From IMG/VR virus record IMGVR_UViG_3300032931_001151, positions 124,001 through 188,000 of that record: a stretch of 64,000 nt of DNA; one strand, written 5' to 3'. Within the stretch, counting starts at the first letter, position 1, and every line of letters starts with the position of its first letter. This document shows positions 4,386 to 19,967 of the stretch, one piece after another. The notes under the pieces were generated by a model that saw only the letters and a list, made by a program, of their open reading frames with translations, was not told the DNA's origin and did no database searches. A program made the translations under genes and the position numbers.

Positions 4386-6491
4386 TTATCTCCTACCCAA
4401 TAAGCCAGTAGCAATCATTTTAGCAATGCTCATTTGATCATCTTGAGTTTGCCCATGTGATTTTGATGTTTGTGGAATATCATCTATTTTTTTAATTATT
4501 TCGGATAATGTTTTCATTATAATATCACTTGGAGACTCTTTTTTATTCGGTTTAGCGGTTGTAGTTCCGCCAGTGTACATACTTGTATAACTTTGAGTTA
4601 TGCTTTCGTAAAATGAAGGGGTTTCCATAGTATCCATCTTATAACTTATATCACTAACAATATCTTTAATTTCAATATTTTGATCTTTGATATCTATAAT
4701 AGCTTTAAATAATTCCGAATTATTTAGCATAGAACTAAAAGAGTTATCATCAATATTAAATGTTTTCTTTAAGAATGCCAACCCTTGCTCATTTAATGGT
4801 ATAGCAGCCTCCGGACCCGCCTCTGCGAATACCGCACGCATAGGTTGTAATGCTATCTTACCTTCAGCGAACCAATTCATGGGATTTATGGTATCTACTA
4901 CACTCTTTCCCCAACTTGCCAATTTATCTGTTACTGCGGAGAATTTCTCAGCTACAATATTGCCAACTTTAGAAGCGGCTTGTGATATCATTTTAGCAGG
5001 ATTAGAAATGAATTCCCAAATACTATTAATTATACCAGAAATGAAATCCCATCCAGATTTAAATGCTTCCCATATCCATGAAATAACGACCATTAAAGTC
5101 TTTGTTATCCAATCAATTACGGGTTGTAGATAAGTATTCCAAAGACCGACTATCTTATCAACCCACGGTTTTATATGCTCTTCATAGAACGCAAAAGCCC
5201 ATTTAAACAGTTTATATAACATATACCCAATTATTAATACTACGGCAATTATAATTATTCCCGCAATTGATGATATTAGACTTAATACGGTTATAAATGC
5301 CAACATTGGTGTTATCACCCCAATTAAATATGCCAATATGCTAAACACTAATGGTACTATGAAAAATAGCGTAGTAAACAATAACACTCCGGTCATTAGT
5401 AAAGTTGCTGCACTAAATAAAACAACTGCCATAAGTAAAGGTATTAAAAAGAATACAACTGCGAATATGGTAGCAACTACTAATAATGCCATTATTGAAG
5501 CTATGAGTAGCAATTCCAAAACAGTAAATATCATAAATGCGAATAAAGTCATTACAACTAAGAATACGGTAGCCATTGTCGTCATTGCAATTATAAACAA
5601 TGAAGCCATAAGAGTGATTGCCGTTATTGCTACCGATGCCATAAATCCAACTATTATACCTACTATAGTCAATAAACCCGTAACTATAGCCGTTGCTAAT
5701 GAAAATAGTAATGTAATTACTGTTGTCGCTAGTGCAAATACTAACGATACTATAGTGGTAGTCAAAGTAAACAAGAATGTTATAACTGATAATGTCAATG
5801 AGAATAAAAAGGATATAACCGTCATTAGTAATTCAAATGCTATTACTACTATCTCCATAATAAATCTAATAACCGTCATTATCATCTCACCAACAAATTT
5901 AATAGCATCTATTAATGGATCAAATAACTTCTTAACATATTCCATTATTTTAGCAACGGGATTGAATGATGCTAACTTAGAAGAAAATGAAGATATAGCA
6001 CCCTTAATGCTCGTAAAAGCACTTGATAGTGCTTTAATTGGTGCAATATTTTGAACTTTAGTTTTTATAGTTTCTGATAATTGCTCAATTACACTTTTGC
6101 TAAATGATATAGCTTTGAGTGGAGCCGACATAACATTACTAACGCTTGTTGCTATATTTTTATATAATATACTTGATGTATTGTTTAATCCTGCTTGAAT
6201 TGACGCCATAGTATCATAATTAGTGCCAACCTTATTATTAATATTCTCTATTATTTTCTTTTGTTCTTTAATAGGAAACTCTTCAAATCCTATTTCTTTT
6301 TTAAATTTATTAACTAATTCATCTCTTTCTTTAATAAATTCATTAGATTTCGGATCTAATCTAGTTGATAGATCGTCCAATGTGCTTTTTAATTTATTAA
6401 ATTTATCATCAATGTCGGCATTAGGCTTAGATGAAGGGATTACTCTCCTCATCAAATCTCCAGCCATTGATGCTGTTATTGTTCCTGCCAT
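4386..6491 (-). CDS. Tape measure protein
   Basis: Long helical protein with 11-residue periodicity, Trp-spaced repeats and the C-terminal 'AEAGPEAAIPL' motif; follows the tube and chaperone genes; has its own late promoter. Confidence 0.75.
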   Translation of the reverse strand: MAGTITASMAGDLMRRVIPSSKPNADIDDKFNKLKSTLDDLSTRLDPKSNEFIKERDELVNKFKKEIGFEEFPIKEQKKIIENINNKVGTNYDTMASIQAGLNNTSSILYKNIATSVSNVMSAPLKAISFSKSVIEQLSETIKTKVQNIAPIKALSSAFTSIKGAISSFSSKLASFNPVAKIMEYVKKLFDPLIDAIKFVGEMIMTVIRFIMEIVVIAFELLMTVISFLFSLTLSVITFLFTLTTTIVSLVFALATTVITLLFSLATAIVTGLLTIVGIIVGFMASVAITAITLMASLFIIAMTTMATVFLVVMTLFAFMIFTVLELLLIASIMALLVVATIFAVVFFLIPLLMAVVLFSAATLLMTGVLLFTTLFFIVPLVFSILAYLIGVITPMLAFITVLSLISSIAGIIIIAVVLIIGYMLYKLFKWAFAFYEEHIKPWVDKIVGLWNTYLQPVIDWITKTLMVVISWIWEAFKSGWDFISGIINSIWEFISNPAKMISQAASKVGNIVAEKFSAVTDKLASWGKSVVDTINPMNWFAEGKIALQPMRAVFAEAGPEAAIPLNEQGLAFLKKTFNIDDNSFSSMLNNSELFKAIIDIKDQNIEIKDIVSDISYKMDTMETPSFYESITQSYTSMYTGGTTTAKPNKKESPSDIIMKTLSEIIKKIDDIPQTSKSHGQTQDDQMSIAKMIATGLLGRR

Positions 6492-6545: not shown

Positions 6546-6833
6546 TTAATGCTTCTTTAGTTCGTTGGCACCAGAATTGGTTCCATATGCCCCGGCGATA
6601 GTCTTACAAATAACTTCGACCGCTTTATTAGCAAATTCAAAGGTGTTTTCTATGAACTTCTTCTTTTGTTCATTATCATCTGTATATTTTTTCTTGAAAA
6701 AGATTCTAAAAAATTCAAACTCAAGGTGATCAAGCTCGTTGATTTGATCTATATTTAATAAACCATTAGACCACACAAGTAACTCAATAATTTGGTTTAT
6801 CGCATTACGATACCCCAAATCAAAGGTCATCAA
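6546..6833 (-). CDS. Tail/baseplate assembly chaperone (gp51-like); possible -1 frameshift extension of the upstream gene
   Basis: Small ORF in the -1 frame directly after the gp26-like gene; TGATG stop/start overlap; no close SD. Confidence 0.55.
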   Translation of the reverse strand: MMTFDLGYRNAINQIIELLVWSNGLLNIDQINELDHLEFEFFRIFFKKKYTDDNEQKKKFIENTFEFANKAVEVICKTIAGAYGTNSGANELKKH

Positions 6834-7627
6834 CTGATAAAAAAAACGGCTACGTTAACCTCCTCTTGAGAAGTATGCTCACAATTAGTACAAGTGAAAC
6901 TAAATGGCAAAGTTACACCAAATTCAAGAGATTCTACATAATCCGTAATAACTTTTAAGTCATTTGAGGTTAAATTGTCCATAAATGACACTTTTTCACC
7001 AATATCCTTGAAGTCAACCTTTTGAGGCTCGCCACCCCCTATTTTAATATATACATTTTTAATAACCGCAGCAAGAATAGCAAATTGCTTATCGGTCATT
7101 GTTTTTAGTTTATTCTTTTTTATATATTCTTCACTTTGGATTTCATCGCTTCTCGTAACAACGCCTAATTCTAATACTAATTGATTATCCCCATTTTTAA
7201 TATTAATTTTAGCATTTTCCCCATCACCCTCATAGAATTTTAAATTTAAACTATCAGTTTTAAATGATATATTCTTATTTACAAATTCACATTTTGGGCA
7301 TTGGTGTGCTATTTTGCATTCCTCTTCACCGTTTGCAACTCTAATGTAGACAAGTATTTGTTGTCTTTCTTGGGTTGTCAACTCTTTTGGATTAAACTCA
7401 CCACCATCTGGTAACTCAACATACTTCATAATTATATCATCAAGTACACTATTGACTATAATCTCATTTTTACTTTCAATAGACTTTAGAAGTTCTTTTT
7501 TATCTTTTACTTTTAGCGGCCTAACTAGAATTGTTTTTCGTGAATAGCACAACTCTATAGACATTTGTGCTGAAATAACGGATTGAGAATAGGCTTTCTT
7601 GAGATCTGTAATAGAAATAGTTGACAT
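6830..7627 (-). CDS. gp26: Baseplate hub assembly / tail chaperone (gp26-like)
   Basis: 'VRPLKVKDKKELL', two CxxC pairs and C-terminal 'FF'; T4 gp26-like architecture. Confidence 0.7.
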   Translation of the reverse strand: MSTISITDLKKAYSQSVISAQMSIELCYSRKTILVRPLKVKDKKELLKSIESKNEIIVNSVLDDIIMKYVELPDGGEFNPKELTTQERQQILVYIRVANGEEECKIAHQCPKCEFVNKNISFKTDSLNLKFYEGDGENAKINIKNGDNQLVLELGVVTRSDEIQSEEYIKKNKLKTMTDKQFAILAAVIKNVYIKIGGGEPQKVDFKDIGEKVSFMDNLTSNDLKVITDYVESLEFGVTLPFSFTCTNCEHTSQEEVNVAVFFIS

Positions 7628-7734: not shown

Positions 7735-8391
7735 TTAGAATACGTTTTGGACTTGTAATCCGAACGTTCCAGCAATTGAGCCAATAGTTCCGCTAACTGT
7801 CGCCGCAACTGATCCAATTCCAGTGTCAACCGATATACCAACGAAGAACGAGTCCGCATTTGCATTGGTTCCAGATCCGGCCATGGTCCAATAATCATAT
7901 GTAAATTCAACTTCAAATTGCTCTGGTTGTTCTCCACCTTCTTGGGCAACTTCAATATTTCCGACTTTTGTGGGGAACATACCAACGAATTGGTATTGAA
8001 CTACCGATTGTGACATTCTATCAAGTTGAACAACTTTAATGTTATCAGCCTTATATTCAATCGGAGCACCATTTCTCATAATTGAGGGGTCGTATTCTCT
8101 TTGCATCCATCCAACCAATTTATTACGGATTGAGTGACCTTCATCACAAAGAAACTTAACTGACCATTTTCCGTCAAATTGAGCAGTATGAGCGATACGC
8201 CACTTTTGAGTTTGGAATGGCACTTCAACGGTCCCAATAGTATACTCGGGAAGTGTAGTAGATCTTGCGAATGCTGTTACTTTTTCGTCAGACGCAAGAT
8301 AGGGAATGCTAATAAGGAATAAGTACGGACGAGAGATATCTCTTATTACATTACCAAATTGTTTAATATTTTGAATTCCATTTAGAGCCAT
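7735..8391 (-). CDS. gp19: Tail tube protein gp19
   Basis: 'RPYLF', 'TTLPEYTIGTVEVPF', 'GMFPTKVGNI', 'EQFEVEFTYDYW'; directly after the sheath gene. Confidence 0.9.
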   Translation of the reverse strand: MALNGIQNIKQFGNVIRDISRPYLFLISIPYLASDEKVTAFARSTTLPEYTIGTVEVPFQTQKWRIAHTAQFDGKWSVKFLCDEGHSIRNKLVGWMQREYDPSIMRNGAPIEYKADNIKVVQLDRMSQSVVQYQFVGMFPTKVGNIEVAQEGGEQPEQFEVEFTYDYWTMAGSGTNANADSFFVGISVDTGIGSVAATVSGTIGSIAGTFGLQVQNVF

Positions 8392-8415: not shown

Positions 8416-10362
8416 TTATCCGTTTGATACGACTTCGGAGAAACTAACTCCGGTAGATACCGCAGTGAAAGTTAATGTAATAAATTCTGCAACTCTATTT
8501 GGCTTAACCATGATTTGAGCAACGAATTCGTTATTATCAATAACATCTGGGGTATTATTTGATGTATCGCAAACAACTTTATAGTCTGTTATACCTCTTT
8601 GCGACTTAATTCCGGATAAGAATGAATTGGCTAAACTTGAGAATCTTGCTCTTGTGAAGTCATCATTGAATTCAAAGATAAGGAATCTTGCCATCTTTTC
8701 AATGCTTCTTTCCATATTAAGGAATAGTCTACGAACATTGATACGATCGAATGCGGTTGGAGCAGCCGAAAGTGTCTTTTGACCCCAAATAACAACCCCT
8801 TGTCCAAAGAAATTTGGAATTGGATTGATTCTATTTGAATACATTACGTCTCTTTGGGCTTGATTTGGATTAATAGCAACCGCATTTATTCCACTAATGA
8901 TACCACGATTCAATCCAGCGGGTGCCCACCATTGAGCGTTGTTGAAATCTACATCTGCAATTATTTGACCAACATAACCAGCAACGGGAACCCAACGATT
9001 TACTTGATTATATTTGTCATAAATATTAAAATATTGTCCATATATTGCTGAATATGAAGAATTAATATTTAACGATCCCAATGGATCTCCACCTTGGACA
9101 TATGCTTTCATCAAAGAGTATGCATTTGCATAAGGCTTTGAATTGTTTATATTAAACATTTTTGATGCGGGCATACTTAAAATTGAGAAACAATCTTTAC
9201 GGATTTGACTTGAAATGAAATCAAGAGTTCTCTTAAGATCGTCAACATATCCTGGATCTAAAAGAAGATCTATTTCAAGAGTTTCTTTATTGGTGAAATT
9301 ATTAAACCATTGTTCTGAGATTTCACCCGTTAAGTTTCCAAGACTTGAACTTAATGAGTCCGCACCCATTAGATTGAATTGACCAGTTGATTGAACTATA
9401 ACGCCGTCTGCACCACTCTCTGACCCATCAACGAAGAAGTAGATATAACTACTTGCCCCATTTATAACAAGAGGACCAAAATCTCTATTTCCTTGACTAT
9501 CAACACTATCTGCATTTTTTGAAACTAAGAATTGTTCTACGAGAGATCCGGCAGGACTCCACACATATACGGCAAATTTATCTTGTTGCGCTATACCAAA
9601 TGCCGTAGCTGGAACTACTGAAGTATCCATTTCTATAATTGGACCAGTTTCAAATGAAACGTATTCAGAAAGTAAAGTTGTATTAATAGCATAATCGTTA
9701 TTAACATCAATTAATTCATCTCTTAATAACGGACTATCGGAAAGATAAGGAACAGCGGGGGATGAGGTTGTGGATGGAGTTCCATTGTACCAAGTTTCTC
9801 CAAGTGTTTGTAAATCATCTAGTGAAACAGCTTGAGAAATTTCTTCTTTGAATTGCTTTAGAAGATCATAATCTAAAGCACTTATAATAGATACTTTAAC
9901 TCCATCATAGTAAGGTCCAGCACCAACTGCGTAAACGTGGAACATTTCACTATCAAGAAGTTCTACATTTCCATCAATCGCTTCATGAGCAGAAATATTG
10001 TCATATGAAAGGGGATAATCGGAAACTGGTTTTTGAGTTGGAAGAATTGTTAAGTTTGCACCCGACAATCCAACCGTGGCACCCGCACAAAGGGTATTTG
10101 CATTTTCTGTTCTAACAACATAAAGTTTATTACTTCCACCTAAGAAGGCGGCGGATGTAAAGAAGTGTGGATAATTTACAGCGTCCGGTTGGCCGAATGT
10201 ATTAACATAGTCTTGCTCATCCGAGACAAGAGTTACAACATTAATAGGACCTTTTTCGGCAGCTACAACTATAGCACCGACCGAACTTGTTACGCTTGGA
10301 ATTCTTAGTGTTTCGTTCGTCTCTACTATTGCTACGCCGGGAGATTGAAGTACTATTGCCAT
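8416..10362 (-). CDS. gp18: Tail sheath protein gp18
   Basis: 'SPGVAIVE', 'WWAPAGLNRG', 'WGQKT', 'FDRINVRRLF', 'FEFND' sheath motifs. Confidence 0.95.
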   Translation of the reverse strand: MAIVLQSPGVAIVETNETLRIPSVTSSVGAIVVAAEKGPINVVTLVSDEQDYVNTFGQPDAVNYPHFFTSAAFLGGSNKLYVVRTENANTLCAGATVGLSGANLTILPTQKPVSDYPLSYDNISAHEAIDGNVELLDSEMFHVYAVGAGPYYDGVKVSIISALDYDLLKQFKEEISQAVSLDDLQTLGETWYNGTPSTTSSPAVPYLSDSPLLRDELIDVNNDYAINTTLLSEYVSFETGPIIEMDTSVVPATAFGIAQQDKFAVYVWSPAGSLVEQFLVSKNADSVDSQGNRDFGPLVINGASSYIYFFVDGSESGADGVIVQSTGQFNLMGADSLSSSLGNLTGEISEQWFNNFTNKETLEIDLLLDPGYVDDLKRTLDFISSQIRKDCFSILSMPASKMFNINNSKPYANAYSLMKAYVQGGDPLGSLNINSSYSAIYGQYFNIYDKYNQVNRWVPVAGYVGQIIADVDFNNAQWWAPAGLNRGIISGINAVAINPNQAQRDVMYSNRINPIPNFFGQGVVIWGQKTLSAAPTAFDRINVRRLFLNMERSIEKMARFLIFEFNDDFTRARFSSLANSFLSGIKSQRGITDYKVVCDTSNNTPDVIDNNEFVAQIMVKPNRVAEFITLTFTAVSTGVSFSEVVSNG

Positions 10363-10458: not shown

Positions 10459-12198
10459 TTAATCTTCGGATTGCATCTCTTTTTCAAAATTTTCCATGTC
10501 TTGTTCTGGACTTGTATAGCCATCCATGTTGAATATTTTCTTAAAATCACTCAATACTTCTTCGTCTTGAACTTCTTCGGGTCGAGTAGATTGTTGAACT
10601 ACTATTTTACTATAAAAATCATTTTTATTATCATCCCACCACTTTGACCTTAACATATATGATACCCAGTAACTTGCGGCTACTTGGTCGTCCATATTGC
10701 CATTCCCACGTTTAGCAGCAAACTTGCCCGGCTTATTACCCTCTTCATATATTCTTAATTCAACTAATATTGAATTAGCATATATCTTACATACATCACC
10801 TTCAACGTCTTCTTTGAAATTAGTAGTTGCCAAAGGCTTTGTTTGAGCATTGGCGTTTACGCCTAATGTTTGGTTGTCATAATCGTAATAAACGTTCTCG
10901 TAGCCCTTTTCCATATATATTTCGTTTAATAGAATGACGCCTAATCCGGTTCCATTATTTTCACATATAATAGAAGCATTATTATATCTTTTAGCTATAG
11001 TTTGTGCAATAGAAGCAAAATCAAATACATTTATATCATTTCTCTTGTATAGTGCTGCTAATTCATAGTAACCTTCTGTATAGTAATTAGTTACATCATA
11101 TATCGCAACCACCGAATTATCGCTTCCTGCTCCGGAAGATACGTCAAGACCTGCAATATATACTCTTCCGGGTTGAGGGTTAGACCATATGTTGAACCAT
11201 TGACTTTCTTGCTTAATAGGGGTCTTTATCATCTTACCCAACGAATCAAGAGCCGCACCACTTAATAAGGTCTTTGAAGAACCCTCAAATTTACATTCAT
11301 ACTCTTGCAACCACGACTGTAAGGAGCCGAGAGCCGCTATAGTGTCTTTCTTAAATTGCTCATCTCTACCCGGAACCTCCCACCATTCTACTTTGAATGG
11401 AGCAAACGGATAAGTACCATCTTGTTTATTAGCACTTTGCCAAATCTCGTAAAATAGGCCGGCTGGACCATTTGGAGTAGACACCAATATAACTTGACCT
11501 TTATTTCCAATAATTGGAAAATTTGATTTCCAAAATTTATCCGCAATATTCTTAGGAACGAATGCGAATTCATCACAAAAAAGTATCTTAGCCGAGAAAC
11601 CACGCAAGGCATTTTCGGAAGTCGCTGCGCCAAATATTGCCGACCCATTTTCAAATTCTATCTTTGTGTTATTATATTCCGTAACACCTGGCTTCATAAA
11701 TGCGGGCAATCCCTCGTATGCTTTACGAATATCGTCAAGAATTTCAATGGCATTCTTTTGCTTATTAGCCAAAACTGCTATATTGCAATGCTCGTTGAAT
11801 ATAGCCGACCAAAGTAGATATATACAAGAAGTTGTAGTGTTATGACTCACTAAACCATTAGAATAAAATTCATGCTCTTCCGAATCTACTTCAACGTCAT
11901 ACATATTCTCTTCATATCCAAGATTTGATATGTAATTACATGCATAATACCCAACGTCCGTTTCAATTAAAGTTCCAATTTGAATGTCTTGTAAATATAT
12001 CGGAGTATGATCTATTGTATAAAGAATATGTGTATCGGCGGCTTTTAATTCATCTCCGTTAACCAACTTAATGTGCCATACTTCATATGGTATAGTCTTC
12101 ATTACCTTATTGATATTTTTAAATCCTTGTGGAGTTTTTATAAGATAGTTAGAAGGTACGGTAAATACTTCTTCAAATTTTCGTATCGGTTGTTCCAT
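10459..12198 (-). CDS. gp17: Terminase large subunit, C-terminal part, preceded by split-intein IntC (aa 1-120)
   Basis: Intein block F/G 'MYDVEV...FYSNGLVSHN' followed by Thr+1; then 'LFCDEFAFV' Walker B, 'STPNG', 'QEYEC' and nuclease 'GLDVSSGAGSD'. SD GAGGA. Confidence 0.92.
   Translation of the reverse strand: MEQPIRKFEEVFTVPSNYLIKTPQGFKNINKVMKTIPYEVWHIKLVNGDELKAADTHILYTIDHTPIYLQDIQIGTLIETDVGYYACNYISNLGYEENMYDVEVDSEEHEFYSNGLVSHNTTTSCIYLLWSAIFNEHCNIAVLANKQKNAIEILDDIRKAYEGLPAFMKPGVTEYNNTKIEFENGSAIFGAATSENALRGFSAKILFCDEFAFVPKNIADKFWKSNFPIIGNKGQVILVSTPNGPAGLFYEIWQSANKQDGTYPFAPFKVEWWEVPGRDEQFKKDTIAALGSLQSWLQEYECKFEGSSKTLLSGAALDSLGKMIKTPIKQESQWFNIWSNPQPGRVYIAGLDVSSGAGSDNSVVAIYDVTNYYTEGYYELAALYKRNDINVFDFASIAQTIAKRYNNASIICENNGTGLGVILLNEIYMEKGYENVYYDYDNQTLGVNANAQTKPLATTNFKEDVEGDVCKIYANSILVELRIYEEGNKPGKFAAKRGNGNMDDQVAASYWVSYMLRSKWWDDNKNDFYSKIVVQQSTRPEEVQDEEVLSDFKKIFNMDGYTSPEQDMENFEKEMQSED
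11839..12198 (-). mobile_element. Split intein C-fragment (IntC, 120 aa)
   Basis: Block B-like 'AADTHIL'; terminal His-Asn codons at 11844-11839; +1 residue Thr (ACT, 11838-11836). Confidence 0.9.
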
Positions 12199-13354
12199 TT
12201 AATTCCTCATTTATTAAATTAACACAATAGTTAATTATAGCATGTTTGTCTTTTTTATAGTCCTTTTCTTTAATATGTATTATTTTTAAAGTAGGATTGA
12301 ATTTTATAATGTTTTCTTCTCTAATTCTATCCCTTTCTTGATTTCCCCTCTTTTCCCCGTGCCAATAATCCCCGTCAAATTCAATACATAGGTTAATTGA
12401 GGGAATAAAAAAATCAAGAAACATCATTTTCTTTTCGGGGGTTATTATCATATATTCAAAATTATCTCCAAATGGATTAATTATGTCTTCATTTTTCCGA
12501 GTTGCATAGTACACTTTTAATTCGTAAGGCAAAAATGACATTATGCTATTAAATAAATCTTGGGATATTTGCGAATAACCCTTACCATTATTCATCTTGG
12601 CTCTTGCTATTCTTTCAATTTCCTCGTCTGGTTTATTTAATAATGTTTCTTGCCATTTATTTTGTCTTTCTTTCCATCTTTTAATTCCCTCTTCCTCACC
12701 AAATTTTTCAATCATTATCTTTTTTGAAAATGTTTGTTGTCTCTCATGAACTTTTTGTTTTGCTTCTTGCTCGGAATATCCCTTTAGTACCCAATATCTC
12801 TCTGATGATGTTGACAAATGGTAGTCCGGATTTTCTTCTTTTCTTTTGGTGAGAGTATCCATCGCCCGTTCTATTCTATTGGTGTTTTTTGCATACCATG
12901 CAGTACTACAAGAAAAGCTACAAAAATCATTAAATCCCCTATCAAATCTAAATCCGTTCTTCTTTCCACATTGCTTACAATGGGTAAAATCTATAGGTTT
13001 CATCATATATTTAATATAATACTCTTCTGTTACCATATTATGTTTCTTTAAATGTCTACTTAAATTTTTCAAAGAGTCAAACAATTCCCCACATTCTTCA
13101 CATTTTATGGTTTTAATAGATTCTCTTCTCTCTTGTTCTAATTCTCTTGTAGATTTTATACTATGTACTTTTTTCTTGTGAGTAGCAAGAGAGATTTTAG
13201 TAGTGCATTTCTCTCCACACACATCGCATATAAAAGGAACTATTCCTTCATATTTCTCAAAATATTCTGCTATATTACACTTATGCACATCTCTTAAGTG
13301 TTGATATAAACAAACATAATTTGGGAACTCTTTATTACATAATTTACAAAGCAT
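12173..13354 (-). mobile_element. Free-standing putative homing endonuclease: C2H2 zinc fingers plus Vsr/DUF559-like PD-(D/E)xK domain
   Basis: Three CxxC...HxxxH fingers, a CxxC...CSxxC motif and C-terminal 'LDFFIPSINLCIEFDGDYWHG'; lies between the two terminase halves. Confidence 0.8.
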
Positions 13355-13374
13355 AGTTATTCTCCTTCATAGTA

Positions 13375-13394
13375 TATTTATATTAGTATACCAT
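13375..13394 (-). promoter_or_regulatory. Late promoter plus extended -10-like site upstream of the endonuclease and TerL-C
   Basis: TATAAATA at 13375-13382 with TGGTATACT just upstream. Confidence 0.65.
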
Positions 13395-13408
13395 ATAGGA
13401 AAGAAAGT

Positions 13409-13756
13409 TTAAATACTTTTTATCATATTGAAAAATTCTCCAATTTCTATCTTTTCAATTTTACCACTTATTTTGTCTAATATTTCAACATATTGTTGAG
13501 ATTGAACACATTTTCCACTTTGTCTACCACTCATAACAACTTTGTGACGATTTCCAACGAAATGCTCAAGTAGCCTTTCTTGGAACTCTCTTAAGTTAAT
13601 TACATGTTCTCCCGCATCACTAATAACCTTATAGTAATTGTTAGCAAAATATTTTATGTCTTGTTTACATCTTAAAATTTCGATAACTTGTTCTTCAGTT
13701 AAATTTCTAGTTTGATTTGGCTTTATAACTCCATTTTCATCATATGTAATTGGCAT
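13409..13756 (-). CDS. gp17: Terminase large subunit, N-terminal part (aa 1-82), fused to split-intein IntN (aa 83-115)
   Basis: 'EILRCKQDIKYFANNY', 'LREFQ' Q-motif and Walker A 'GRQSGK', then Cys1 'CVQSQQYVEI...IEIGEFF'. Confidence 0.9.
   Translation of the reverse strand: MPITYDENGVIKPNQTRNLTEEQVIEILRCKQDIKYFANNYYKVISDAGEHVINLREFQERLLEHFVGNRHKVVMSGRQSGKCVQSQQYVEILDKISGKIEKIEIGEFFNMIKSI
13412..13510 (-). mobile_element. Split intein N-fragment (IntN, 33 aa)
   Basis: Begins with Cys (TGT, 13510-13508) immediately after the Walker A Lys; block A-like pattern. Confidence 0.85.
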
Positions 13757-18080: not shown

Positions 18081-19889
18081 TCAACAAATCATATTAAATC
18101 TCATATGTCCACAATCATAAATTCTAAATAATCCATTATCTCTCGCAAGTTGTTCTTCGGTTTTCGTGGGATCCCCTTTAAATATCTCTATTAGTTTTTG
18201 TTTTGTATAAGCAAATCTATGCTTTCTTTCAAATGAAGTCCCCTCTCCAACATAATAGTATCCTGGACGAGTATTATAGTCATATGTAAATCCTAGTTTC
18301 TCGTATACTCCACCATTACCCCATCTCAAGTCACAAAATGTTATTAATCTACTATTTTTATGCCCTTCCTTAAATGCTTTAAGTAACTTATTAGCTCCAC
18401 CCATAACTATTGAATCTAATTTAGAACAAAATCTATTTAATTCCCAGTCGTACACATCAATAGATCCTCTCTTTACGATTGACGGTTTGCTAAAAGTCAT
18501 CACGGCAATTAGATCGTCTTTATTAAATAGACCATAAGCAATGTGGGATTTTCCTTGTCCTTGTATATGATTTTCTTCGCAAAACTTTAATGCTATGATA
18601 TTATCTATTTGTTCACAAGTAGTCTCTCTTGCTCCAATTTTATTTTTTGTTTTACCAAAAATATGTGATAATCTCGATTGACAAATATTCTTCTTGAGTC
18701 CCCATTCATCACTAAATATGGTAACTAATCTAATTCCTTTTTCTTTACATTTCTCAAACTTATCCTTATGATAATTAGGATCTACTTTATATTCCGTAGA
18801 ATGCCAATTCAAGCCACAAAATTCAATAGCCGTTTTTGTTTGCTCGTCGTAAATATCTAACTCTAATGGGCTTATAATACTCCTATTGTCATTAGAAATT
18901 TTTCGTCCTAATAGTCCCTCTAAATAATCTTGAACTTCGGTTTGTTGTTTTCTTTTAGTTCCTTTAAAACATTCTGGACATGATAGGTTGTATCTATTAG
19001 CATTTATTTTCTCCCAACTTTTAGAAAATTCATGTCCACAATTATTACATTTAAAGTCTATTGGGGTTGAAATGTTTGAATAAAATTTTGGATTTTTTGG
19101 AAATATATTGCTTGTTTTAAATACTTCAATTGCATGATCGTATAACTTCTTTCTATTAAAAATTTTAGCACATTGTAAGCATTTTACCCCTTTTATAAAA
19201 AGATTAAACGGCGGCTCTTCTTTCACATATCCACAAGTTTTACATTGAAACACTCCTTTATGTCTTGTACCATTATATTTGACAATATGCCAATTTGATG
19301 TTTTAAATTTTTCAACAAGTGTATCTGTTAATGCTTTATTTAGGGTAGTCGGAAGTAACTCTATAGGTTCTATAATAGGAGTCGAGTTATCTTTAATGTC
19401 TTCAATAAATATTTCTACTTTTTTCATCGGCATTAGACCAAAATTTTCTATTTTACACGATTCGCATACGTGTACTTTTCCTATATTATTCCTCTCCCAA
19501 TGAAACAAGGCTTTTATACTATCCTCTTTCCCACATTTTTTACAAATTATATTTAAAACGTCGTCCCATCTACTATAAAAATCTTTTTTCGGATAATATT
19601 CCAAATTATTAGAGTCGCAATATTTTTGTATTAACTCTTTTGGTATTTGTTTTTCGGCATTTCGCTTTTCAGTATTACAATGCGGACACCCTTTACTTAA
19701 ATCAATATTTTTACCTTCTATATTTGATATACTTTTAACGAATATATGTGATGGATTTTGAGAACATCTTAATTTTAAAAGCATATTCTTATTGAAGTTT
19801 TGAATATCTACTTTCTCTACAATTTCACAACCTTTGTTTATAATATACTTTTTAGTTAATTCTTCAAAACTTGGCTTTGGTCTTGGCAT
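18081..19889 (-). mobile_element. Hef-like free-standing endonuclease (zinc-ribbon repeats, PD-(D/E)xK domain, C-terminal 'NHIQG...YDCG' domain)
   Basis: Multiple CxxC ribbons; 'ELDIY...AIEFCGLNWHS', 'IFSDEW', 'WELNRFCS', 'RIYDCG'; downstream of gp23; start at 19889 inferred from SD. Confidence 0.75.
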
Positions 19890-19935
19890 TAATGTTTTCC
19901 TTTTTTGGTCTATAGATATATTATAAATCCAAAAT

Positions 19936-19967
19936 AAAAAAGGCAAGGGTTTTATCCCCTGCCTTTT
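19936..19967 (-). terminator. Intrinsic terminator after the major capsid gene
   Basis: AAAAGGCAAGGG/CCCCTGCCTTTT stem with U-tract on the minus strand. Confidence 0.75.

Follow-up and report, generated by a model that had tools for sequence, protein, structure and literature searches.

Comparative evidence supports a run of eight T's at the very end of a T4-family "baseplate hub" gene as a conserved programmed -1 ribosomal frameshift site that would fuse this gene to the small gene after it, and this would make these poorly understood proteins the T4-type counterpart of the G/GT tail assembly chaperones of phage lambda. The gene lies on the minus strand of a 64,000-nt stretch (positions 124,001 to 188,000, hereafter the window) of IMG/VR record IMGVR_UViG_3300032931_001151, and no fusion product has been observed; the evidence comes from sequence comparison and structural modelling without protein, ribosome-profiling or RNA data.

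The slip site and its surroundings

The features of the locus, with positions in the window, are as follows.

8416-10362, minus strand: tail sheath gene (Phage_sheath_1 and Phage_sheath_1C domains; phrog_23, E 3e-99)
7735-8391, minus strand: tail tube gene, the upstream neighbour (phrog_45, E 1e-38)
6830-7627, minus strand: gp26/gp51-family gene of 265 aa, the 0-frame 'G-like' product, with two CxxC pairs (C110/C113 and C246/C249), ending EEVNVAVFFIS
6859-6865, minus strand: Shine-Dalgarno-like GAGGAGG, a candidate upstream stimulator
6839-6846, minus strand: T8 run, with the in-phase slippery heptamer T_TTT_TTT at 6845-6839
6830-6832, minus strand: 0-frame stop TGA, two codons after the heptamer, overlapping an ATG at 6830-6828
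6546-6839, minus strand: -1 frame extension, the 'T-like' part, of 97 codons (YQLMTFDLGY...ELKKH) plus the stop
6780-6829, minus strand: 3' hairpin, a candidate downstream stimulator (outer stem 6829-6825/6785-6780, main stem 6822-6815/6795-6788, inner stem 6812-6807/6803-6798)
4386-6491, minus strand: tape measure protein gene of 701 aa, the downstream neighbour (phrog_58, E 3e-13)

The upstream gene ends GTT TTT TTT ATC AGT TGA, and the GAGGAGG motif lies 12 nt before the T-run and 13 nt before the heptamer. The downstream ORF is in the -1 frame and is open from 6854 (a -1 frame TAA lies at 6857-6855) to its stop at 6548-6546, and a slip after the second Phe codon gives VAVFF-YQLMTFDLGY, exactly as an earlier note on this sequence had read it. 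No GGAG/GAGG/AGGA motif lies within 20 nt upstream of the ATG, although 32 of 52 long ORFs in the window have one. The upstream gene is a member of PF12322 (64.2 bits against a cut-off of 24.5, covering residues 25-254), which contains both T4 gp26 and T4 gp51, and it also matches the phrog_150 baseplate hub profile (E 6e-18). The earlier note had named the pair as gp26-like and gp51-like, but the downstream 95-aa ORF is not a full gp51 and at best corresponds to the C-terminal ~50 residues of that protein.

Conservation of the site among relatives

Close cultured relatives were not found, as a tblastn search of the window protein against 50,697 phage records gave nothing and blastn gave only sheath-gene similarity, and relatives were instead drawn from IMG/VR, metagenomes and protein clusters. 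In 22 distinct homologous CDS sharing 39-100% aa identity, 58 of 62 conserved degenerate codon columns use 2-6 codons and only the four consecutive codons GTT TTT TTT ATC never vary. In contrast, other conserved Phe columns in the same genes are TTC:TTT 16:6, 7:14 and 16:6. Junctions that used TTC codons or varied in relative frame would have counted against the frameshift proposed in the earlier note, but in 34 loci of the window's clade, with six more added later, every junction reads GTT TTT TTT in the same -1 relation. Furthermore, the three codons between the slip site and the ATG change only synonymously in the -1 frame; five nucleotide versions of the 9 nt after the T-run all encode Tyr-Gln-Leu in that frame, while the 0 frame changes Ser to Asn. 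The Ile codon is always ATC, whose C starts the -1 frame Gln codon, and the 0-frame stop is TAA or TGA in relatives, both of which keep Leu in the -1 frame. Moreover, a relative (locus L218) has ATA in place of the ATG. The -1 ORF itself is conserved in 20 relatives with 61% mean column identity.

Candidate stimulatory elements are present on both sides of the site, although their effect on slippage is inferred. A GGAG/GAGG/AGGA motif lies 8-20 nt upstream of the heptamer in 24 of 25 distinct clade loci, against 6.5% of same-size windows in the same genes, and the Glu codon here is GAG 17:4 while most other conserved Glu columns prefer GAA. The 3' hairpin has an MFE of -18.8 kcal/mol (z -4.3) and is the most stable of 148 60-nt windows in its own locus, and across 14 loci the site averages -16.4 against a background of -7.8 kcal/mol (Mann-Whitney p 6e-10). 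However, RNAalifold over 19 clade sequences gave no consensus structure, and although 88% of cells pair in 10 close relatives, only one pair shows a compensatory change, so the hairpin is supported by stability and covariation support is thin. In addition, the main stem starts 16 nt after the heptamer (the outer stem 9 nt), which is longer than the usual 5-9 nt spacer.

Similar sites are found in two distant subfamilies, including cultured cyanophages. In 78 of 80 loci of a cyanophage/pelagiphage-like subfamily and 80 of 80 of another, the gene ends NNT TTT TTY plus 0-2 codons plus stop, followed by a -1 ORF of 53-74 codons that mostly has no early ATG; the first Met is at median position 19 or 32, and seven loci have none. 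TTC is allowed in the last codon, which fits X_XXY_YYZ, and in the cyanophage-like subfamily the +1 frame runs about 4 codons past the stop in most loci. The -1 ORF profile matches T4 gp51 residues 205-246 (hhalign probability 95%, E 3.9e-8), and phrog_634 ('baseplate hub assembly catalyst') hits the -1 ORF of Synechococcus phage S-RIM8 (9e-30), the gp51 C-terminus (8e-11) and the extension of P0126 (8e-6), which like T4 gp51 is a natural in-frame long form. Homology of the window's own extension to the gp51 C-terminus is only weak, as no Pfam or PHROG hit was obtained even at loose thresholds (for phrog_634, none at E <= 1), BLASTP against T4 gp51 was not significant, and the profile match to the merged -1 ORFs of the sister subfamilies, in the same register, has an E of 3.9e-4 and a probability of 36%.

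Programmed frameshifting and its alternatives

With fairly high confidence, these findings are best explained by a programmed -1 ribosomal frameshift. In this reading most ribosomes translate the 265-aa protein and stop at TGA, while a minority slip back one base when the two tRNA-Phe sit on T_TTT_TTT, read TAT CAG TTG ATG in the -1 frame and make a fusion of 263 + 97 = 360 aa; the GAGG-type motif and the hairpin probably raise the slip rate, as in E. coli dnaX. It should be noted that U_UUU_UUU is a weaker shifter than A_AAA_AAG in E. coli (PMC5009743), and the host here is unknown. The arrangement is inferred to be ancestral to a very large part of the PF12322 family, and T4 itself appears to encode the short and long forms as two separate paralogous genes, 26 and 51. 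There is one PF12322 gene in the window's genome, in S-RIM8, in SP-15 and in a complete 169-kb phage, but two in T4.

The alternative named in the earlier note, simple translational coupling in which ribosomes terminate at TGA and reinitiate at the overlapping ATG, is consistent with the TRATG overlap in nearly all clade members and with the absence of an SD for the small ORF, which is typical of coupled genes. Nevertheless, coupling alone is unlikely, as it gives no reason for the nucleotide invariance of GTT TTT TTT 9 nt upstream when every other conserved codon drifts, for the purely synonymous -1 frame changes upstream of the ATG, for the ATA of L218, or for sister subfamilies in which the homologous ORF has no ATG for a median of 19-32 codons while that upstream stretch is conserved and homologous to in-frame gp51 sequence. 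Coupling may still operate in addition to frameshifting, and the small ORF could also be made on its own by reinitiation, since an ATG overlaps the stop in all but one locus of the window's clade. Transcriptional slippage, in which RNA polymerase adds one extra U in the U8 run, would give exactly the same product as a -1 ribosomal shift, and homopolymer runs of about 9 may support polymerase slippage in bacteria. This is also improbable, although it could not be judged on RNA reads, as most sites in the two sister subfamilies are only six T's long (T_TTT_TTC in 42 of 78 and 51 of 61 distinct loci) and are always in the X_XXY_YYZ phase with the preceding codon forced to end in T, which fits ribosomal tandem slippage and is too short for efficient polymerase slippage. 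In the window's clade T8 follows automatically from Val (GTN) plus the heptamer, and the flanking SD-like motif and hairpin are features of ribosomal frameshift cassettes.

Least likely is that the T-run is conserved for a reason unrelated to recoding, such as a U-rich translational enhancer for the small ORF, a protein-level need for Val-Phe-Phe combined with AT-rich codon bias, or a recurrent homopolymer assembly error that hides a single fused gene. The genome is about 32% GC, and FF near the C-terminus is conserved as protein across the family, including T4 gp26, where it is TTC TTT and no extension follows. However, codon bias fails because other conserved Phe columns in the same genes use TTC more often than TTT and conserved Val columns use all four codons. 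Similarly, assembly error fails because more than 30 independent contigs from different samples and assemblers give T8 and the same frames, and sister subfamilies with T6 runs show the same frame relation, while an enhancer role cannot apply where no ATG follows.

Relation to tail assembly chaperones and to T4

The proposal in the earlier note that the pair is equivalent to G/GT is supported by gene position, by the predicted N-terminal fold and by natural in-frame long forms, although the chaperone function is inferred. In the window and in relatives the order is tube, PF12322 gene, small ORF and tape measure, with an ORF of 677-905+ aa following the small ORF in relatives. An AF2 model of the window protein (pLDDT 89) places residues 1-103 closest to the HK97 tail assembly chaperone 2ob9 (Z 6.9, 96 of 104 residues aligned), the top hit of 48,161 chains, followed by YqbN 3klu (5.4) and 3fgx (4.8), with the first unrelated match at Z 3.8. 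These Z values are moderate, and Foldseek against the PDB and a profile search of PDB sequences gave no match. By analogy, the short form would coat the tape measure protein and the rare long form would add a second binding function.

As in lambda gpG/gpGT and the conserved frameshift of long-tailed phages (Levin, Hendrix & Casjens 1993; Xu, Hendrix & Duda 2004; summarised in PMC5009743), the two ORFs overlap, the -1 shift is a few codons before the stop of the first and the second part is short. In contrast, the first ORF is about twice the length of a usual tail assembly chaperone, belongs to PF12322 and has a second domain with two CxxC pairs, the slip site is U_UUU_UUU and not G_GGA_AAG, an SD-like motif lies upstream and a hairpin downstream, an ATG overlaps the stop, and the family is annotated as 'baseplate hub'. 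The E. coli dnaX cassette has the same three-part layout of an internal SD-like element about 10-14 nt upstream, a homopolymeric X_XXY_YYZ heptamer and a 3' stem-loop (PMC5009743), but its heptamer is A_AAA_AAG, its shift truncates the protein whereas the shift here would extend it by 97 residues, and the hairpin spacer here is longer (9-16 nt).

The T4 proteins gp26 and gp51 both keep the two CxxC motifs of the window protein, and gp26 keeps the FF near its C-terminus while gp51 has Val-Phe at the equivalent position. T4 has two separate genes and no slip site; gp26 ends GAG TTC TTT GAG TTA CTA TAA and is followed by gene 25, gp51 carries its extension in frame, and neither is next to the tube gene. 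It is somewhat more likely than not that the PF12322 'baseplate hub' proteins are the missing G/GT-type chaperones of the T4 superfamily and of several other large myoviruses, that their ancestral expression mode is one gene with a -1 frameshift at U_UUU_UUY just before the stop, and that T4 and its close relatives replaced the frameshift with a gene duplication in which gp26 is the short form and gp51 the in-frame long form. The G/GT frameshift is regarded as nearly universal in long-tailed phages, but to our knowledge no equivalent has been named for T4-type phages, and gp26 and gp51 ("subunit" and "assembly catalyst" of the hub) have only proposed chaperone or cofactor roles (PMC9024508). 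No description of a gp26/gp51 frameshift was found in full-text literature searches or in PMC3037559, PMC9024508 and PMC5009743, a survey that did not extend to what Xu et al. 2004 says about T4. If this reading holds, it would give these proteins a concrete function and partner, the tape measure protein gp29, would correct the annotation of the many phage and metagenome genes that end in this site (the family has about 1,100 representative clusters at 50% identity), and would show recoding and gene duplication as interchangeable ways to make a short and a long form of one protein.

It would also explain why cyanophage and vibriophage 'gp51' genes look like C-terminal stubs. Cyanophage gp51 was noted to be only ~20% of the T4 length, without explanation (Sullivan et al. 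2010, PMC3037559). In S-RIM8, for example, the single PF12322 gene ends AGT TTT TTC GGA TAG with a 66-codon -1 ORF followed by a long ORF, and the annotated 45-aa 'gp51' starts at an internal Met. In these cyanophage pairs the heptamer may end in C, no ATG overlaps the stop, and the -1 ORF is shorter (53-70 aa) and clearly matches phrog_634, whereas the window's extension does not.

Some lineages may have switched to a +1-frame version. In the Thornevirus phages Bacillus phage SP-15 and Listeria phage LIS04 the order is sheath, tube, PF12322 gene, unannotated conserved ORF and tape measure, and a T6 run sits on the FF codons near the end of the gene. However, the conserved ~80-residue extension is in the +1 frame and the base before the run is A or G, so the recoding event must be +1, -2 or a deletion-type slip and is not a -1 tandem shift.

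The junction and its genomic setting

The window is part of a 214-kb virus record of about 32% GC, and it encodes a T4-type major capsid protein (Pfam Gp23, E 6e-99), gp15 and a T4-type terminase. On the minus strand, the genes are arranged in the following order.

8416-10362, minus strand, tail sheath gene
7735-8391, minus strand, tail tube gene
6830-7627, minus strand, gene for a 265-aa protein
6546-6833, minus strand, small ORF
4386-6491, minus strand, gene for a 701-aa tape measure protein

The 265-aa protein is a clear member of PF12322 T4_baseplate (64 bits against a cut-off of 24.5), and its gene ends GTT TTT TTT ATC AGT TGA. The heptamer T_TTT_TTT is in the X_XXY_YYZ phase, and the small ORF lies in the -1 frame and is open from five codons before the T-run, with an ATG that shares its A with the stop codon. 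A slip after the second Phe codon would give ...VAVFF-YQLMTFDLGY..., a 360-aa product. Furthermore, a Shine-Dalgarno (SD)-like GAGGAGG lies 13 nt upstream of the heptamer. Every element of the observation made in the earlier note, namely the T-run before the stop, the SD-like motif upstream, the open -1 frame and the position between the tail tube and tape measure genes, is confirmed.

The tape measure protein has a central stretch of roughly 250 residues (about 190-440) made almost entirely of hydrophobic residues (I, V, L, F, A, T, M), which is unusual in length for a tape measure protein. The large terminase gene (10459-13756, minus strand) is in pieces: a 115-aa ORF (13409-13756) ends just after ...GRQSGKC, a 393-aa ORF with C2H2 zinc fingers and an endonuclease-like C-terminus follows (12173-13354), and a 579-aa ORF (10459-12198) has first ~120 residues that end ...LVSHNT, with a weak Intein_splicing hit, before the Terminase_6N domain. 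This looks like a fractured gene with split-intein halves and a free-standing homing endonuclease between them. Similarly, a 621-aa ORF (18081-19946, minus strand) with many CxxC zinc-ribbon repeats and a weak Mom-family match (PF25680, E 2.5e-4) sits inside the structural gene block next to the capsid gene and may be another mobile endonuclease-type insertion.

Conservation of the T-run and its flanking signals

To examine whether the T-run reflects more than codon bias, homologues of the 265-aa protein (57 clusters down to 39% identity) and their DNA were collected from IMG/VR, metagenomes and assemblies. All 34 loci that contain the junction read GCN GTT TTT TTT AT(C/G) NNN T(A/G)A TG, and six more loci do the same, except that one has ATA in place of the ATG. 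As a control, a codon alignment of 22 distinct genes was used, with 62 columns in which a degenerate amino acid is at least 90% conserved. Of these columns, 58 use between two and six codons, and the only invariant ones are four consecutive codons, Val-Phe-Phe-Ile = GTT TTT TTT ATC. The other conserved Phe columns use TTC as often as or more often than TTT, and conserved Val columns use all four codons, so the run is held by selection on the nucleotides. The earlier note had proposed that TTC codons or variable frames in relatives would count against its reading, and this test fails to refute it.

The 9 nt between the run and the ATG occur in five versions (ATCAGT/ATCAGC/ATCAAC/ATCAAT with TAA or TGA), and all five encode Tyr-Gln-Leu in the -1 frame, although the 0 frame changes Ser to Asn. 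One subclade has Tyr-Val-Leu. The Ile codon is always ATC, never the ATT or ATA that these AT-rich genomes prefer elsewhere, and its C is the first base of the -1 frame Gln codon. No start codon lies between the -1 frame stop and this stretch. The locus with ATA (L218, positions 1769-1795), a relative with 62% identity to the window protein, keeps GTTTTTTTT ATCAGTTGA but lacks the overlapping ATG that all others have, and the gene caller started its small ORF at the TTG Leu codon. This is limited evidence, as only a few substitutions are involved, but it is consistent with translation entering the -1 frame at the run.

A GGAG/GAGG/AGGA motif sits 8-20 nt upstream of the heptamer in 24 of 25 distinct loci, compared to 6.5% of equal windows in the same genes. 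The Glu codon that forms it is GAG 17:4, whereas most other conserved Glu columns favour GAA. The phage uses such motifs before 32 of 52 long ORFs, so its host reads them. In addition, the 60 nt after the slip site fold with a mean of -16.4 kcal/mol, against -7.8 for 1,939 other windows of the same loci (Mann-Whitney p 6e-10), and the hairpin of the window itself (-18.8 kcal/mol, z -4.3) is the most stable of 148 local windows. Different subclades form the hairpin with different sequences, which is why RNAalifold found no common structure. Within the subclade of the window, 88% of cells pair but only one pair shows a two-sided change. The layout of SD-like motif, heptamer and hairpin is the same as in dnaX, although that these elements stimulate slipping here is inferred.

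Distribution across the family and the link to T4

A profile search found 1,146 representative clusters, and of the 139 full-length proteins among the 150 best, 104 end within three residues of an FF dipeptide. DNA from two distant subfamilies shows what this means. In 78 of 80 loci of a cyanophage/pelagiphage-like group, and in 80 of 80 of a second group, the gene ends NNT TTT TTY, then 0-2 codons, then a stop, and the codon before FF always ends in T whatever amino acid it encodes (AGT, TCT, AAT, GAT, GGT, GCT). The -1 frame extension is 53-74 codons long, while in the cyanophage-like group the +1 frame runs only about four codons past the stop in most loci. The first Met of the -1 ORF is at median position 19 or 32, and seven loci have none, yet the stretch before it is conserved and the ORFs of the two subfamilies align from residue 3-5 onward (hhalign probability 98%, E 5e-13). 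The cultured cyanophage S-RIM8 shows the arrangement plainly: its 'gp26' ends AGT TTT TTC GGA TAG, and the annotated 45-aa 'gp51' is the ATG-trimmed tail of a 66-codon -1 ORF. However, the frame relation is not uniform in the most distant branches, as a 25%-identical relative (L020, 3400-3802) ends ...PTFLWPSARR and has an overlapping ORF of about 110 codons in the +1 frame and no T-run heptamer.

T4 gp26 and gp51 are both PF12322. The former ends ...KEFFELL with TTC TTT, which is not slippery, and is followed by gene 25, whereas gp51 carries a 48-residue in-frame extension. The -1 ORF profile of the cyanophage-like subfamily aligns to gp51 residues 205-246 with probability 95% (E 3.9e-8). Independently, phrog_634 matches the S-RIM8 -1 ORF (9e-30), gp51 residues 195-249 (8e-11), and the C-terminal extension of a natural 325-aa long form, the protein P0126 (8e-6). 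P0126 lies in tandem with a 273-aa short paralogue after the tube genes of its locus (L133, 2762-4564), which is the duplicated short-plus-long state, as in T4 but with the genes adjacent. Genomes that have the slip site carry one PF12322 gene, while T4 carries two. The T4 record (NC_000866; 1303-1590 of locus L021) also annotates a second product of gene 26, called 26' (95 aa), from an in-frame internal start, so T4 gene 26 also yields two related proteins by a different route. T4-type gp51 homologues (protein clusters P0206-P0297) carry a second precomputed Pfam family, PF28602, beside PF12322.

It has been recorded that cyanophage and marine vibriophage gp51 lack the first ~200 residues, without explanation (Sullivan et al., 2010; PMC3037559), and a frameshift fusion from 'gp26' explains it. 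The extension of the window itself is longer, with 97 residues and a conserved ...EFIKNTFEFAKK.VE.ICKTIAGAFG... tail. It matches the merged sister profile only weakly, although in the same register (E 3.9e-4, probability 36%), and it has no phrog_634 hit, so calling it gp51-like, as the earlier note did, is plausible but not shown.

Alternative explanations and predicted function

Translational coupling alone, polymerase slippage, codon bias, assembly error and a U-rich enhancer were each weighed, and none explains the whole pattern. Reinitiation at the overlapping ATG may coexist with frameshifting in the clade of the window. Because the last heptamer base may be C in the two distant subfamilies, and the run is then only six T's long, tandem ribosomal slippage fits better than polymerase slippage, although some polymerase slippage on U8 cannot be excluded without RNA data. 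The frameshift itself is considered likely. No published description of it was found in the searchable literature or in a 2016 review of recoding (PMC5009743).

An AlphaFold model of the 265-aa protein is confident (pLDDT 89). Foldseek found nothing in the PDB, but an exhaustive structural alignment against 48,161 chains put the HK97 tail assembly chaperone first (2ob9, Z 6.9, 96 of 104 residues, model residues 1-103), followed by YqbN (3klu, Z 5.4) and 3fgx (Z 4.8). The first hit that we do not take for a relative is at Z 3.8, and lactococcal phage p2 ORF12 appears lower in the list. These Z values are moderate, but the three leading hits are taken to be phage tail chaperone-type proteins, which for YqbN and 3fgx is presumed from their genomic context, and the best one covers a whole domain. 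Together with the gene position, this supports a G/GT-like chaperone role, in which the binding partners of the two parts are inferred from lambda (PMC5009743). The wider reading, in which gp26/gp51 are the G/GT equivalent across the family and T4 uses duplication instead of recoding, is held with less confidence than the frameshift, and we regard it as somewhat more likely than not.

The gene position also holds in Bacillus phage SP-15 and Listeria phage LIS04. In both (5690-5950 of the SP-15 locus, L043, and 5680-5945 of the LIS04 locus, L044) the PF12322 gene at the chaperone position has GAA/GAG TTT TTT on its FF codons, and a conserved ~80-residue ORF without a start codon, unannotated or only partly annotated in both records, follows in the +1 frame. 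This suggests a +1, -2 or deletion-type recoding variant of the same system.
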